Shown: positions 315-8,206 of the stretch, one piece after another | Layout of the letters: the number at the start of each line of letters is the position of its first letter | How positions within the stretch are numbered: position 1 is the first letter of the stretch | Origin: Salpingoeca rosetta | Lineage: Eukaryota > Protista > Choanoflagellata | Direction: 5' to 3' | Assembly: GCA_033442325.1 (NCBI GenBank) | Contig: JAWQFM010000007.1 | Span: 997,684 to 1,061,683, forward strand | Length of the DNA stretch: 64,000 nt | Program-made: the position numbers and the translations under genes | The notes under the pieces: model-generated | Seen by the model: only the letters and a program-made list of their open reading frames with translations | Told to the model about the DNA's origin: nothing | The model's database searches: none

Positions 315-1079
315 GTTCCTTGGTGACCTCTCACGCGAGGGTGCCATCGACGTGCTTCGCGGCACGCCGCCAGGCACGTTCATCGTGCGCACGACCACGT
401 CCCAGTGCATCCTCTCCGTCAGAGGGCCCACGCCAGATGCCGTTCGCCACTTTGAGGTGAGCCGTTGGTGTCTGTGGCTGTGGCTGTGTGTGTGTGTGTG
501 TAGCTGTGTGGGGGGGCAGGGGCTGTGTGCACCTGCTCTCTCTCTCTCTCTCTCTCTCTCTCTCTCTCTCTCTCTCTCTCTCTCTCTCTCTCTCTCTGCA
601 TGTCTGTGCATTGAGCTGGCTACATCCCTTGCCTACATCCCTTGCCTCTGCCGCCATCCCCCCTCTCTTCGTATCTGCTTTCCTTTCATTTCCCACACAT
701 CACACCACCACACATGGCTACGCCGCACCTTTCCCCTTCTCCCCTCGGCAACACAGATCCAACGTACAAAGGACGGCAAAGTTCGCTTGGGCGACGAAGA
801 AGAGCAGTTTGACTCCATCCCCCACATGGTACGGCATACTCGACAAGCTGGGTGCTGCTGGTCATCTTTGGTTGATTCTATTTCTCGATCTTCCCCACAT
901 CAAACACGCCACGCTCAACCTTGCACACACACACACACACACACACACACACACACACACACACACACACACACACACACACACACACACACACACAAAC
1001 AAACGAGCAAACAAACGAGCAAACAAACGAGCAAACAAACAAACAGGAACGGTCATACCGACACAGGCCACAGAAATAG
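315..1079 (+). CDS. SH2-domain protein, 3' part only (upstream exons lie outside the window; last exon uncertain)
   Basis: Exon 315-456 (cag|...|gtgag) encodes (W)FLGDLSREGAIDVLRGTPPGTFIVRTTTSQCILSVRGPTPDAVRHFE, with the SH2 GxFLVR-like motif GTFIVR. An exon from 757 encodes IQRTKDGKVRLGDEEEQFDSIPHM (FxSL motif). It ends either by splicing 829-1046 to ERSYRHRPQK* (stop at 1079) or by read-through to 1200. Confidence 0.8.
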
Positions 1080-4000
1080 GACAACAAAGCGGTGCTGCTC
1101 CTCGGAAGGCACAGCAAGCGGGCTTTCAGAGTGTAACAGGAACATGCGCAGTCCAACATCGGCGCCTGTGCTCTTGCTGGGAAACAGCTCAAGACACTGA
1201 CTCCCCTTCTTGTCCTTCACGCGCTTCTCAAGCGACTTGAACTGAGGAATGGCCCGCAGAACATTCGCCGGGCAGAACGCGTGCTGCCACTTCCCTTTGT
1301 CTTCCAGCGGCACCCGCACTTCTGCATTTGGTCGCCAGCTCTGGCCCGTGATCTGAACCAGGGACCCAAGCGCTGCTCGCAAGTCCGGCAGGGTCGGGAG
1401 ATGGCCGTCCTCAGACAGCGGCGATTGCACCTGAAAGCCGCGAACGAGGCTGCGCGCTGGGGCCGCCTGACCAAGTTCACCCTCCCACACAACCACGGCT
1501 GGGGACTCCTCATCCAGCGCGCCACCGGTGGTTTGCTCTGCAAACATCCCAAGAACAGCCCCCTTCCCATCAGAGCTGGTTGCAGTCTCTGATGCCTTGG
1601 TGGCTGGCTGGCTCTCTCCGCTCGTGGTGGCTTGCGCCTCAGCTGTAGCTGAGTTGCCCGTGTCTGTGCTGTTTGGCTTCTTCTCCTCTTCCTTGTTTGC
1701 CTGTGGAGCGGCAACAGGTGCTTTACCCCAAGCGCTCACCGGCGCAGAAGTGCCACCCTTACCGTCAGCACACGCACTGCTGCTGCTGCTGCTGCTGCTG
1801 CTGCTGCTGCCGTTGCCGTTGTTGTGGCTGTTGTTGTTCAGCGCATGGCGGATGGTATCATCGCTTGGCAGCGGCGGAACAGGAGGGGGGTGTGCCGCTT
1901 CTGACCTCGGTGCCATTCCCCAGCCATTGCCACCAGTCGCTTGCGGCTGGTTGGGTTCCTGGGGCCGCTGCTCTCGCTTTTTATCGTTTGAAGGCGCCGC
2001 CGACGCCCACCCCCACGCTCCGCCCGTTGCCGTCGCTGTGACTGCTCGGGGTGCGACTGCGCCCCACGCTGATGGCGGTGTGGCGGATGAGGGTGTGGTT
2101 TCTGCAGCCTGGGTTGCTGCCTTGGGTGCCGGCACGCCCCATGCGCTTGTTGCTGCTGTTGTGTTAGATGCCGAGACACCATGGCCACCAACACCTAGTG
2201 TTCCTGCTGATGAGGACAGCGCCGAGGCGCTTGCTTGTTCTGGACGGCTGACCGTCCCCGGCGGTGCTGGCGCCCCCCACGCGCTCGATGCCTGTGGCTC
2301 ACGCTGCTGGGTTTCCAAGCCGCTCCTGCCGCCATCGACACTCACAGGCTTGGCAGCTGCTTGCAGGGGCACCGATGCAGCATTTCCTGCTGTGAGTGTG
2401 GCCGCTGCCGTCAATGAGGCTTGGCCAACCGCACGCCCACGCCCACGTCCACGAACCACTGGCTGCTGCTGGTGTGACGCCTGGGCTGGGTCTGCCGCTG
2501 TTACTGGAGCCGCTGTGGTTGTGACTGGTGTTGTTGCTGCTGTCGCTGGTGGTGTTGTTGCTGGTACTGTTGTGGTTGTGACTGTTGTTGCTGCTGTCAC
2601 TGCTGGTGCTGTCGCTGGTGCTGCTGCTGTTGATGAGTCTGGCACTGGCGCCTTCACTCCCCACATGCCGGTTGCTCCGCTCGTTGCCGGCGGATGTGCA
2701 GGTTGCTGGCTGGGTCGTGATGCCTGCTGTTTCCCGCCGTCTTGCTGCTGTGACGGTGCCTGTGGCACAGGACCTGGTGCTGTTGCTGCTGTTGCTGCTG
2801 TTGCTGCTGTTGCTGCTGTGCTGCCCCAGGCATGCGCTGGTGCAGCAGTCGTGGCAACGCCGCCCGCCTTCTCCTGCGGCTTGGCTTGTGCGGTTTGCCC
2901 ACCCCACATGCCGGGAGCACTGCCTTGTGTCGACGAGGCTGATGATGGCGCCGCCGCAGGTTGTTGTGATTTGGACGGCGCTGCTGGGGACGACACTTTC
3001 CCGCCCCACGCAGATGCCGCAACGGCATGCGCTGGCTGCTTGGCCGCGACGACTGGTGCGGGCTGTGTTGCGCCCACACCCCAACCCGTAGACGGCTGTT
3101 CCGGCTGTCGGGCGTTTGAAGGCGCTGCCCATGCATTCACGGGCTTGCTGGCCTGGGGCGACGCAGCGCCCCACACAAACCCGGCCTTGCCTGCTGCCAC
3201 AGCTGGGGAGCTCACGCTAACGTCAGAGCCCTGGCTATCAGCACCCTTGGGTGTGCCCCACCCTGAGACAGCCGCGTTTGCAGTGGACGCTGGTGCCGTA
3301 GGGCTCCCCCACGCAGACATGGCCGCGCTGGCGGACGAGGGCGCGGTCGTGCCTTTTCCTGCTCCTGCTCCTGCTCCTGTGTTTGGCGAAGGAGAACCCC
3401 ACAGGGAGGACGCAGATGCTGATGCCAAAGAGGCGGTTGATGTTGAAGGGCTGGAACGAATCGGTGCTGAACCCCAGGAGTTCCCAACGTCTGACGGCTT
3501 GTGGCGGTCAGAGAACCGACGACCATCACGCCCACCACCACGCCCACCACGATCACCACCACGCCCACCACGGCCTCGACCTCTATCCCGACTGCGGTCG
3601 CGGTCACGGTCACGGTCACGGCCAAACCCTCGCCCGCCCACACTTCCACGCTTGTCACGGCCACTTCCAACGTCGCGGCGATCACGGTCTCCTCTGCCTT
3701 GGCTCCGGCTCCGCTCGCTGTCGCGCCGGGGTCGATCGCGCTCTCCTCCTCGGCCACGATCCCTCTCCCTGTCGCGCCTTGCACCGTCGCTCACAGACGA
3801 TCGCGAGCCCCGTCGGTCGCGGTCACGGTCGCGGTCACGGTCGCGGTCACGGTCGCGATTCGCGCTTCGTTCCCAGCCTCGGTCCCGGCCCATGTCTGCT
3901 TTGTCGCTACCGCTCGGCTGGCGTCCGTGGCTGGAGCTTGTGGTGCCTGTGGGGGTGGCTTTCCCTTTCCAATCACCGCTGCTGCCGGTGTTGGTGCCCG

Positions 4001-7000: not shown

Positions 7001-8206
7001 ACACGGGCTCCATCACGCCCTGCCAAGCGATGTATGTGCGGCACGTCACTGCGCGAGGCTGCTTGTTTGCGCAGGATATCAGCTTGTTGTGCTTCTCGTT
7101 GAAGTCCTCCACAAACCCATGGCACAGCTCCAAGCCCTCCTATTGTGGCATGCGTGAGTGTGTGTTGGGGGGGGATGTAGGAGAGGGGATGGGTCGGGGA
7201 GTGTGAGTGTGTGTAGGGTGTGTGTGTAAGTGAGAGGGAGTGAGTGAGTGTGTGTGAGGAGGGAGGGAGGGGAGAGGGAGAGGGAGAGGGAGAGGGGGAG
7301 AGAGAGAGAGAGAGAGAGAGAGAGAGAGAGAGAGAGAGAGAGAGAGAGAGAGAGAGAGAGAGAGAGAGAGAGAGAGAGAGAGAGAGAGAGAGAGCGGGTT
7401 GGAGTGGAAGTGGTTGCATGCAGACAGGATGTGAGGGCGTGGTGTGATGCGCTGTGTTGTGATAAGAAGGGAAAGAAGAAGGGAAGGAAGCGCACACCAG
7501 ATGCAAGCATGTGTGCGCGCCCCATGAGGTTGCATTGCATGCACCCACAACCACGTGGTCCAGCCGCTTTGCAGCAGTGCACATGCATGCACTCACACAC
7601 AACAGCAAAAACAACAACATGTTCAAGTACAGCGACACATCTACACTTCCACAGAGTTCATCTACACGTATGTAGACATGCACACCAACACCGACACCTA
7701 CACTGACATGCATACCAACAGACAAGGTCGTTCGCACATGCACACATACTTCAGGCTCCCAGGTGTTTTCCGAGGCAGGGTAGCCCAGCCATTTCACGAG
7801 GTAGTACGCCTTCTTCTTTGATTTGTCAGTAAACATGCCTTGCACAGCCTCCACCTCATACAACTCCTGTGGTCAAGACGTTGGGTTCAGCACACCACAG
7901 CATCAACATTCATCCATCAGTGCACATGCAGCACACGCTCGTGCATGTGGTGTGATGTGACAATCCTCCCAGCTCTCGTGCTTCCCTTACTTCACCACTC
8001 ATTCACCCACACACACACACACACACACACACACACACACACACACACACACACACACACACACACACACACACACACACACACACACACATATGAATCT
8101 GGACAGCCAGCCCACCATCACGCATGTCATGTGTGTGTGGGGGGGGGAGCGACCGCACCACCCACATCTCCGTACACCGACGAGTGCCCCTCACCTCGTC
8201 CGCCAT
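878..8206 (-). CDS. Chromodomain + DUF3715 pseudo-PARP + PIN/NYN-like + WG-repeat + SPOC-like protein (~2083 aa; TASOR/Chp1-like)
   Basis: Exons 8206-8195 (MADE|gtgag), 7866-7750 (ELYEVEAVQGMFTDKSKKKAYYLVKWLGYPASENTWEPE|gtatg), 7139-1059 (2027 codons) and a probable 919-878 (VERGVFDVGKIEK*; otherwise stop at 1053). All junctions are GT-AG, phase 0. The chromodomain motif is unambiguous; the other domains are called by motif resemblance. Confidence 0.85.

Follow-up and report, generated by a model that had tools for sequence, protein, structure and literature searches.

The window analysed here is a 64,000-nucleotide stretch of the genome of the choanoflagellate Salpingoeca rosetta (GenBank assembly GCA_033442325.1, contig JAWQFM010000007.1, positions 997,684 to 1,061,683), and on its minus strand, near its start, lies a three-exon gene whose predicted product is a protein of 2071 amino acids. 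The protein joins on one chain a chromodomain, a predicted pseudo-PARP domain, an NYN-like domain, an Arg-rich RGG/RD tract, an array of Trp-Gly (WG) motifs and a globular-looking C-terminal block (Table 1). This architecture is new, and the function proposed below for the protein is an inference. The original prediction for the locus had proposed that the protein fuses modules of the HUSH and RITS silencing complexes and that it may be an evolutionary link between them. A literature search (TASOR with choanoflagellate; NYN with chromodomain and PARP) found no description of such a combination of domains; the original prediction likewise knew of none.

An open reading frame (ORF) scan of the window gave a frame of 2026 codons at 1053-7133 on the minus strand, to which two short upstream exons are spliced; all of the junctions are in phase 0 and the introns have GT..AG ends. 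The RNA evidence comes from raw stranded RNA-seq data (two runs) and from transcript contigs (two sets), aligned over 2450-8400. The joint at 7138/9->7749/50 skips 610 nucleotides with CT..AC ends, equivalent to GT..AG on the minus strand, and is present in two transcript contigs and in one read from each of the two raw runs. The joint at 7865/6->8194/5 skips 328 nucleotides, again with CT..AC ends, and is found in one contig of 1558 nucleotides that runs from 8237 through exons 1 and 2 and then through 1.35 kb of exon 3. Contigs within exon 3 are colinear from 7138 to 2450 and break solely at places of low complexity. The first mates of the read pairs are nearly all plus-strand, which fits minus-strand RNA in a dUTP-type library. 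The gene is transcribed and spliced, with the chromodomain exons joined to the 6-kb exon in RNA contigs as the earlier gene model had them, and it is the predicted length of about 2083 amino acids that gives way to one of 2071. One of the outcomes named beforehand as a refutation, that these exons are spliced separately from the long one, is thus contradicted by the RNA. Other RNA joints, such as 2632->5983 with AT..TG ends, lie within low-complexity repeats and were treated as assembly noise. Both introns hold microsatellites, (GT)44 at 8004-8091 in intron 1 and (CT)61 at 7272-7394 in intron 2, each as read on the coding strand. Some RNA reads and contigs have variant letters at 2564 (G>T in about half of the reads), 3831, 3843 and 5994-6000; all of these sites are in or adjoin low-complexity coding repeats, and the variants could reflect alleles, differences between strains or misplaced repeat reads.

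Table 1. Features of the gene and its product, in the order of transcription (window positions; ORF residues are those of the 2026-codon frame; a slash marks a splice boundary)
Feature	Position	Strand	Basis or remark
5' untranslated region (UTR), minimum extent	8207..8237	-	transcript contig reaching 8237
Exon 1, M-A-D-E (ATG GCG GAC GAG/gtgagg; start codon and 3 codons)	8195..8206	-	sequence; RNA joint
Intron 1, 328 nt	7867..8194	-	sequence; RNA contig
Exon 2 (cacag/GAG...GAA/gtatgt), first 39 chromodomain residues	7750..7866	-	Pfam Chromo; sequence
Intron 2, 610 nt	7140..7749	-	two RNA contigs and two raw RNA runs
Exon 3, 2028 codons, begins after aatag/, stop codon at 1053-1055	1053..7139	-	open frame; RNA contigs
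Chromodomain C-terminal helix, EGLELCHGFVEDFNEKHNK	7083..7139	-	in frame with exon 2; completes Chromo profile by eye
Ordered-looking stretch, proposed second chromo-like unit	6864..7082	-	no match in Pfam, PDB or own-genome HMM
Acidic-Ser run then V-I-V-M (S-S-S-S-D-D-D-D-D-V-I-V-M)	6519..6569	-	pattern scan
First WG cluster, 4 motifs, in Ser/Thr/Ala-rich disorder (ORF residues 343-425)	5859..6107	-	motif count, shuffles
Probable PARP-fold domain, probably catalytically dead (ORF residues ~524-768)	4830..5564	-	ESM features; phmmer/PDB; hhalign
NYN-like (PIN-superfamily) domain, acidic site probably degenerate (ORF ~820-975)	4209..4676	-	ESM features; hhalign
Second WG array, 17 motifs [SAG]-W-G-[SAGTV] (ORF residues 1009-1803)	1725..4109	-	motif count, shuffles
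RD/RS/RGG tract, 136 aa	3489..3896	-	composition, pattern scan
Hydrophobic-rich, globular-looking C-terminal block, ~147 aa	1056..1496	-	sequence

The chromodomain lies at the N-terminus of the protein. Exon 2 alone matches the Pfam Chromo profile (PF00385) at 45.6 bits (E 6.7e-12; cut-off 25.1 bits), it scores 41 bits against a hidden Markov model (HMM) built from 17 chromodomain matches of its own genome, and it matches 54 chromodomains in the Protein Data Bank (PDB) at E<=0.01, the top ones being those of SUV39H1, CDYL, LHP1, CDYL2, HP1, CHD1, CDY, MPP8, CBX7 and Chp1. No special affinity to MPP8 or Chp1 was seen among these PDB matches. The three positions of the aromatic cage are in register with CDYL and SUV39H1 in the PDB alignments, as the Y of ELYEVE, the W of VKW and the Y of GYP. 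Judged from these alignments, the N-terminal domain is a canonical chromodomain of the HP1/CDYL/SUV39 type with an intact cage and is predicted to read methyl-lysine; the original prediction had named a chromodomain at this place. A second chromo-like unit had also been proposed, in the ordered-looking stretch that follows the chromodomain. This was rejected: the stretch has no match at E<=10 in Pfam or the PDB and its bit scores against the own-genome HMM are negative with all HMMER filters off. Chromodomain matches number at least 23 in the genome as a whole, and many lie within retroelement-sized frames.

The WG motifs, 21 in total, lie in disordered sequence and are flanked by Ala, Ser, Gly, Pro and Thr, with a spacing in the second array of mostly 17-64 residues. 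The 1375 residues outside the globular blocks contain 26 Trp, with 1 Tyr and 9 Phe, and Gly follows the Trp in 21 of the 26 cases, whereas 20,000 shuffles average 2.7 such cases and never exceed 10. The WG enrichment is far beyond chance. A repeat check of the array found that tandem DNA repeats are not the source of the motifs and, therefore, each of them has been maintained separately. The strictness of the W-G dipeptide suggests a specific recognition motif over generic stickiness. Embedded among the WG motifs is the RD/RS/RGG tract, which has 48 Arg (35%), 28 Gly and 27 Asp and holds six of the seven RGG-type boxes of the protein; this tract, the four-motif cluster and the long array, all named in the original prediction, are confirmed. 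A weak PDB match of the tract to the RS/RD tail of DHX8 was set aside as one of composition only. A pattern scan found several basic patches in the protein that resemble nuclear localisation signals (NLS), together with an acidic-Ser run ending in V-I-V-M that is a possible SUMO-interaction motif of the phospho-regulated form. Some 60 residues upstream of it there is a comparable acidic stretch, D-D-S-D-G-S-S-D-D-D-D-D-I.

The assignment of the PARP-like block has moderate support from three methods. Sixty-one of its 100 nearest clusters by protein language-model (ESM) features are PARP catalytic domains, with a top score of 0.95, and the sole match in a phmmer search of the PDB is the catalytic domain of PARP10 (E 0.0085-0.011); the match begins at the first residues of that domain and is followed by a second colinear fragment. 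With hhalign the block aligns colinearly with a broad PARP profile of 24 sequences, seeded with a PARP7/11/12-like PARP of this genome and completed with 23 diverse PARP domains, at a score of 22.0 (P 0.018), a score reached by two of 200 shuffles (mean 13.6, sd 2.6); as controls, the NYN segment scored 12.2 and the C-terminal segment 12 against the same profile. Narrow profiles made solely from PARP families of this genome scored no higher than shuffles, and a search seeded with a macro-PARP of the genome for a diverse PARP set gathered just two S. rosetta paralogues. A genome-wide PF00644 search produced 37 other matches and none at the block. In the alignment register R-I-D-N-P...W falls on the R-V-Q-N-K-x-L-W motif. 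Where the H-Y-E triad has its His, the alignments variously place L, C or M (YFMLCDT against lFHGT), the triad Tyr is retained (NGVYAW; G-x-Y) and the third triad position is hydrophobic, so that the H-Y-E (or H-Y-I/L) NAD-binding triad of active enzymes is not present. On this evidence the block probably has a PARP fold and, if that call is right, it would be a pseudo-PARP because the NAD-binding triad is incomplete. TASOR also has a pseudo-PARP, with L184 at the His position and Y217 kept (bioRxiv 10.1101/2020.03.09.974832), although the His-lost, Tyr-kept pattern is not diagnostic of TASOR and is shared to varying degrees by other inactive PARPs. The proposal that the block is of the TASOR type is not borne out at the level of the family: there is no match to DUF3715 (PF12509) at E<=10 in the block, or at E<=1 in the whole genome by a search for which control genomes are uninformative for the family, and the sequence matches of the block are to catalytic-type PARPs only (PARP10 in the PDB and the PARP7/11/12/14-like profile). 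A probable PARP fold, inactive by its residues, is the part of that proposal that survives.

The assignment of the NYN-like block has moderate support from two methods. NYN (PF01936) accounts for 94 of its 100 nearest ESM clusters, with a score of 0.92 and 182 shared features, above the guide value of 170. Its hhalign alignment with a profile of 34 sequences (33 NYN domains from bacteria and a single one of this genome) is full-length and colinear, from residues 5-158 of the query to 2-148 of the template, with a score of 21.9-22.5 (P 0.006-0.008); none of 160 shuffles reached the real score (mean 12.5, sd 2.3, maximum 19.8; z about 4), and the PARP and C-terminal segments gave 15.0 and 11.4. 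A genome-level PF01936 search had no match at the locus. Of the acidic site, the hhalign alignment retains the N-terminal Asp (VYVD) and a single Asp of the SGDGDF D-x-D (GGGSDS...F) and leaves the other acidic positions unmatched; its confidence is low in the middle, and the site is probably degenerate. NYN domains belong to the PIN-like superfamily. The predicted PIN/NYN-like domain is upheld at the level of that superfamily, and by its ESM and hhalign matches the block resembles an NYN of the LabA/MARF1 type, not the DomII-PIN unit of Chp1 and TASOR. The best PF01936 match of the genome, at C32:576138-576470, lies at the N-terminus of a single-exon protein of 1243 amino acids, in which Pfam finds nothing else and whose sequence shows no relation to the present gene.

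The C-terminal block has no match in Pfam (E<=10), NCBIfam, PADLOC or the PDB, no usable ESM-feature match and no paralogue in the genome. An AlphaFold single-sequence model of it, made for want of homologues to align, reached a confidence (pLDDT) of 46.1, and shape searches with that model in Foldseek/PDB and the ESM Atlas returned noise only. It starts with V-W-x-G and has a hydrophobic rhythm that by eye may be SPOC-like, as a lead only.

Relatives of the protein were sought in very large databases, for which the thresholds are strict. An exhaustive phmmer search of 1.84 billion representative proteins with ORF residues 520-1000 had 0 matches at E<=0.001, a word-index search with the same residues had none and a scan of metagenome contigs had none, in collections that exclude the window's own genome, so that the lack of a self-match carries no weight; an orthologue sharing 25-30% identity over the two globular domains should nevertheless have been picked up. 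The PARP/NYN block has no paralogue in the genome, and scans of the protein segments beyond the chromodomain with Pfam, NCBIfam and PADLOC (E<=10) produced nothing relevant. By these searches the protein is lineage-specific or fast-evolving.

The 55.45 Mb and 68 contigs of the genome contain neither a Piwi (PF02171) match at E<=0.001 nor a PAZ (PF02170) match at E<=1, in agreement with the report that S. rosetta is without Argonaute and Dicer while other choanoflagellates have them, with about five independent losses (Richter et al. 2018, PMC6040629). The WG motifs therefore cannot be Argonaute hooks in the organism today, contrary to what had been proposed for them. Methylation of H3K9 and H3K27 has been detected in S. 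rosetta by mass spectrometry (Gahan et al. 2025, PMC12572184); its H3 has Thr at position 10 and H3K9me3 is unmapped so far (PMC12572184). A genome search for Pre-SET (PF05033) had no match either, but control genomes are uninformative for this family and the blank carries no weight as regards H3K9 methyltransferases.

The likeness of the protein to HUSH (TASOR, MPP8 and Periphilin) lies in the kinds of module that it contains. An H3K9me-type chromodomain would fill the role of MPP8, the probable PARP fold lacks the NAD-binding His and keeps the Tyr in the manner of TASOR L184/Y217, there is a probable PIN-superfamily domain, and Arg-rich low-complexity sequence of the RNA-binding type would fill the role of Periphilin. 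TASOR is also linked to CCR4-NOT, through cooperation with CNOT1 (PMC8748822), and W motifs are a known device for recruiting that complex. Unlike HUSH, however, the S. rosetta protein has all of its modules on one polypeptide, it has no DUF3715 match, neither DomI nor DomII was seen in it, and its nuclease-like domain is of the NYN type. Its order is PARP-NYN-C-terminal domain, whereas that of TASOR is PARP-SPOC-DomI...DomII-PIN; TASOR has no WG array and sequence kinship between the two is undetectable. TASOR-like proteins are defined by an N-terminal DUF3715-SPOC-DomI arrangement (PMC10578480), and the protein falls outside that definition in having a Pro-rich linker and an NYN-like domain after its PARP-like block. 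As in Chp1 of RITS, an N-terminal chromodomain and a probable PIN-superfamily domain are on one chain, and as in Tas3 there is a region of GW/WG motifs. The short GW region of Tas3 binds Ago1, however, and the genome here has no Piwi or PAZ, while Chp1 has no PARP-like domain and has the order chromodomain, SPOC, DomII, PIN. No similarity of the protein to TASOR, or to the SPOC-DomII-PIN unit of Chp1, could be shown. The proposed fusion of, and link between, HUSH and RITS is thus not borne out, given the missing DUF3715, TASOR and Chp1 matches, the permuted order, the different type of NYN domain and the want of a homologue. No homologue was found in other organisms and therefore nothing places the protein between RITS and HUSH. 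We take the resemblance to be an analogy that arose through domain shuffling, and not common descent that has been demonstrated.

Other systems share single features with the protein. The long disordered Trp array flanked by Gly, Ser and Ala recalls GW182/TNRC6, NRPE1, SPT5L and Tas3, but the motif here takes only the W-G form, without a mixture of GW and WG, no Argonaute is present as a partner and the array is fused to chromatin-reader and pseudo-enzyme domains. In GW182, motifs of this kind also contact CNOT9 and PAN3 without the help of Argonaute. The functional pairing of an inactive PARP with an NYN nuclease in RNA surveillance is familiar from ZAP (PARP13) and KHNYN, and MARF1 (LabA/limkain-type) has a PF01936-type NYN, the family to which the language-model and profile comparisons point. 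Those proteins differ in being cytoplasmic and in having CCCH zinc fingers, KH, or RRM/LOTUS domains, with ZAP and KHNYN on separate chains; none has a chromodomain or a WG array, and the NYN domain here seems to be without most of the acidic catalytic residues. Chromodomain-PARP fusions occur in Mucoromycota among PARP1/tankyrase-like proteins (bioRxiv 10.64898/2026.07.25.740670). These too have a chromodomain and a PARP domain on one chain, but they are sporadic, active PARP1-like homologues with WGR and have no NYN domain, WG array or RGG tract.

We propose, as a reading that may well be right but falls a little short of probable, that the protein is a lineage-specific nuclear scaffold for RNA silencing or RNA processing that is tethered to chromatin and works in a manner analogous to HUSH and RITS. 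The functional analogy to those complexes is a reasonable hypothesis. The chromodomain would dock the protein on nucleosomes methylated at H3K9, H3K27 or both, and the RGG/RD tract, possibly with the pseudo-PARP, would hold nascent RNA. The PARP-like and NYN-like domains would have lost key catalytic residues and would act as binding modules. The WG array would recruit another protein with tryptophan pockets, for which the best-known precedent is CNOT9 of CCR4-NOT; the partner would be other than Argonaute because the genome is without one. Transcripts from marked chromatin, such as those of transposons, would in the end be repressed co-transcriptionally or decay.

Several points weigh against the proposal of a chromatin-tethered scaffold. 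The identity of the WG partner is a guess. Neither the PARP-like nor the NYN-like block has a Pfam match at E<=10, and the two calls rest on weak statistics (empirical P of about 0.01 and of <0.006) and on language-model similarity, while the calls on catalytic residues depend on alignments of low confidence. An AlphaFold2 single-sequence model of residues 523-990 has a pLDDT of 33.8. No orthologue was found that could show conserved WG motifs or domains, the gene is weakly expressed (depth 1-8x in roughly a quarter of each RNA run), and RD/RS tracts are also typical of splicing factors.

In one alternative the protein is a chromatin-associated RNA-processing factor outside silencing that reads histone methylation over gene bodies or at specific loci, with its RS/RD/RGG sequence steering splicing, 3' processing or export and its WG region serving as a condensate domain. 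The RD/RS/RGG composition is like that of splicing-factor tails (the DHX8 match), spaced aromatics in disorder rich in Ser, Ala, Gly and Pro are typical of phase-separating sequences, and the neighbouring genes, an SH2 gene and a P-type ATPase, are ordinary ones. We nevertheless think this alternative unlikely, since chromodomains of the HP1/CDYL/SUV39 type mostly read repressive marks, a pseudo-PARP with an NYN-like domain is no signature of a splicing factor, and 21 of 26 disordered Trp in a strict W-G dipeptide suggests a recognition motif. In another the protein is a cytoplasmic RNA-surveillance or antiviral factor of the ZAP(PARP13)-KHNYN or MARF1 type, belonging to the PARP expansion of the genome, with a chromodomain that reads methyl-lysine on a non-histone protein. 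ZAP, itself an inactive PARP, acts together with the NYN protein KHNYN, and the RNase MARF1 has a PF01936-type NYN domain and limits retrotransposons. Beyond these precedents, the expansion of PARPs in the genome (37 or more PARP-profile matches, with a multi-copy macro-PARP family among them) and the fast-evolving or orphan nature of the protein, as is often seen in immune genes, would suit such a role. It is improbable, however, given that the protein has no paralogue among the PARP families of the genome, that its canonical chromodomain and basic NLS-like patches point to the nucleus and that its acidic NYN site looks degenerate.

The alternative closest to the original prediction is one of true kinship with TASOR and Chp1, in which the protein would resemble an ancestor that unites HUSH and RITS modules on a single chain, with a DUF3715-type pseudo-PARP, a C-terminal SPOC domain and vestigial or active Argonaute hooks. 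The types of module do coincide (chromodomain, His-lost/Tyr-kept pseudo-PARP, PIN-superfamily domain, Tas3-like GW/WG and Periphilin-like sequence), the SPOC domains of TASOR and Chp1 are invisible to sequence profiles, and the several losses of Argonaute within choanoflagellates leave room for a recent ancestor that had one (PMC6040629). One account places the first appearance of HUSH in cartilaginous fish and has it derive, as a proposal, from RITS (PMC7619638); TASOR-like proteins are reported across metazoa and DUF3715 is reported to be older than the vertebrates (PMC10578480). Kinship is distinctly unlikely all the same: the DUF3715 profile has no match in the segment or the genome, and the sequence matches of the segment are to catalytic-type PARPs only; the nuclease-like domain is of another type than DomII-PIN, its place in the chain agrees with neither TASOR nor Chp1, whose domains come in other orders, and DomI and DomII are not seen; no homologue was found in an animal, a fungus or another holozoan and the genome has no Argonaute; and the 23 chromodomain matches in the genome make local domain shuffling the simpler account. 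It is very improbable that the domain calls beyond the chromodomain are chance resemblances in a fast-evolving and mostly disordered protein, in blocks that would have no defined molecular function. The lack of Pfam, NCBIfam and PADLOC matches, the very low AlphaFold confidence and hhalign probabilities that are small in absolute terms (2.5-6.5%) would be expected of chance, but independent methods converge on two families with colinear full-domain alignments and motifs in register, and the cross-controls are at background (15.0 for the PARP segment with the NYN profile and 12.2 for the NYN segment with the PARP profile).

The chromatin-tethered scaffold can be given a more specific form, which we regard as rather doubtful. 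After the loss of Argonaute and Dicer the lineage would run a HUSH-like silencing of nascent transcripts that is independent of RNA interference (RNAi) and is carried out by one polypeptide, with the chromodomain on chromatin, the pseudo-PARP, pseudo-NYN and RGG sequence on RNA and the WG array recruiting CCR4-NOT or another effector with tryptophan pockets. In such a protein the WG array may have been repurposed from Argonaute hooks or may be convergent with them. If this is true, the sister group of the animals holds an independent, single-chain solution to the problem that HUSH and RITS solve, and a natural case of GW motifs acting on chromatin without Argonaute; should the protein be no more than a scaffold specific to its lineage, it would remain an example of a new domain architecture. 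Transposon silencing in the closest relatives of the animals is poorly known and S. rosetta is without RNAi, so an expressed protein in this genetically tractable organism is a concrete candidate for knockout. It makes testable the question of whether HUSH-like logic predates the animals or is convergent, together with the questions of what GW/WG motifs do without Argonaute and what a pseudo-PARP contributes to RNA-directed silencing.

The PARP complement of the genome includes two expanded families. The first is a large, multi-copy family with a macro domain and a PARP domain, on contig C4 (about 0.55-2.2 Mb) and at C25:292-298 kb, whose members are relatives of PTSG_02793 and PTSG_11904 and for which precomputed Pfam annotation also gives an ATP-grasp domain. 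It has 74 exon-level matches at 56-98% identity, and many of the copies have in-frame TGA or TAG stops; a good share of them look like pseudogenes. The second family consists of single-exon proteins of ~375 amino acids that keep an H-Y-E-like triad (WHGC ... GIYLTP ... FEEYVV), in at least a dozen copies on different contigs, with loci that include C13:1698708, C32:33875, C25:356104, C20:1226891, C24:1202293 and C2:37708.

The gene is flanked downstream by a convergent open frame at 1-1200 of the window on the plus strand, which encodes an SH2 domain (Pfam E 5e-5, residues 106-153), runs in from the start of the window and stays open over the last ~150 nucleotides of the gene. Upstream, a P-type cation ATPase is encoded on the minus strand at 10.5-14.2 kb. 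RNA depth on the minus strand at 8221-8400 and 8400-8640 is about 400-790 in word depth, compared with about 15 over the gene; this RNA, which is on the same strand as the gene and ends less than 100 nucleotides upstream of its 5' end, is probably the 3' end of an upstream gene. A frame in this region encodes a run of about 16 Asp.

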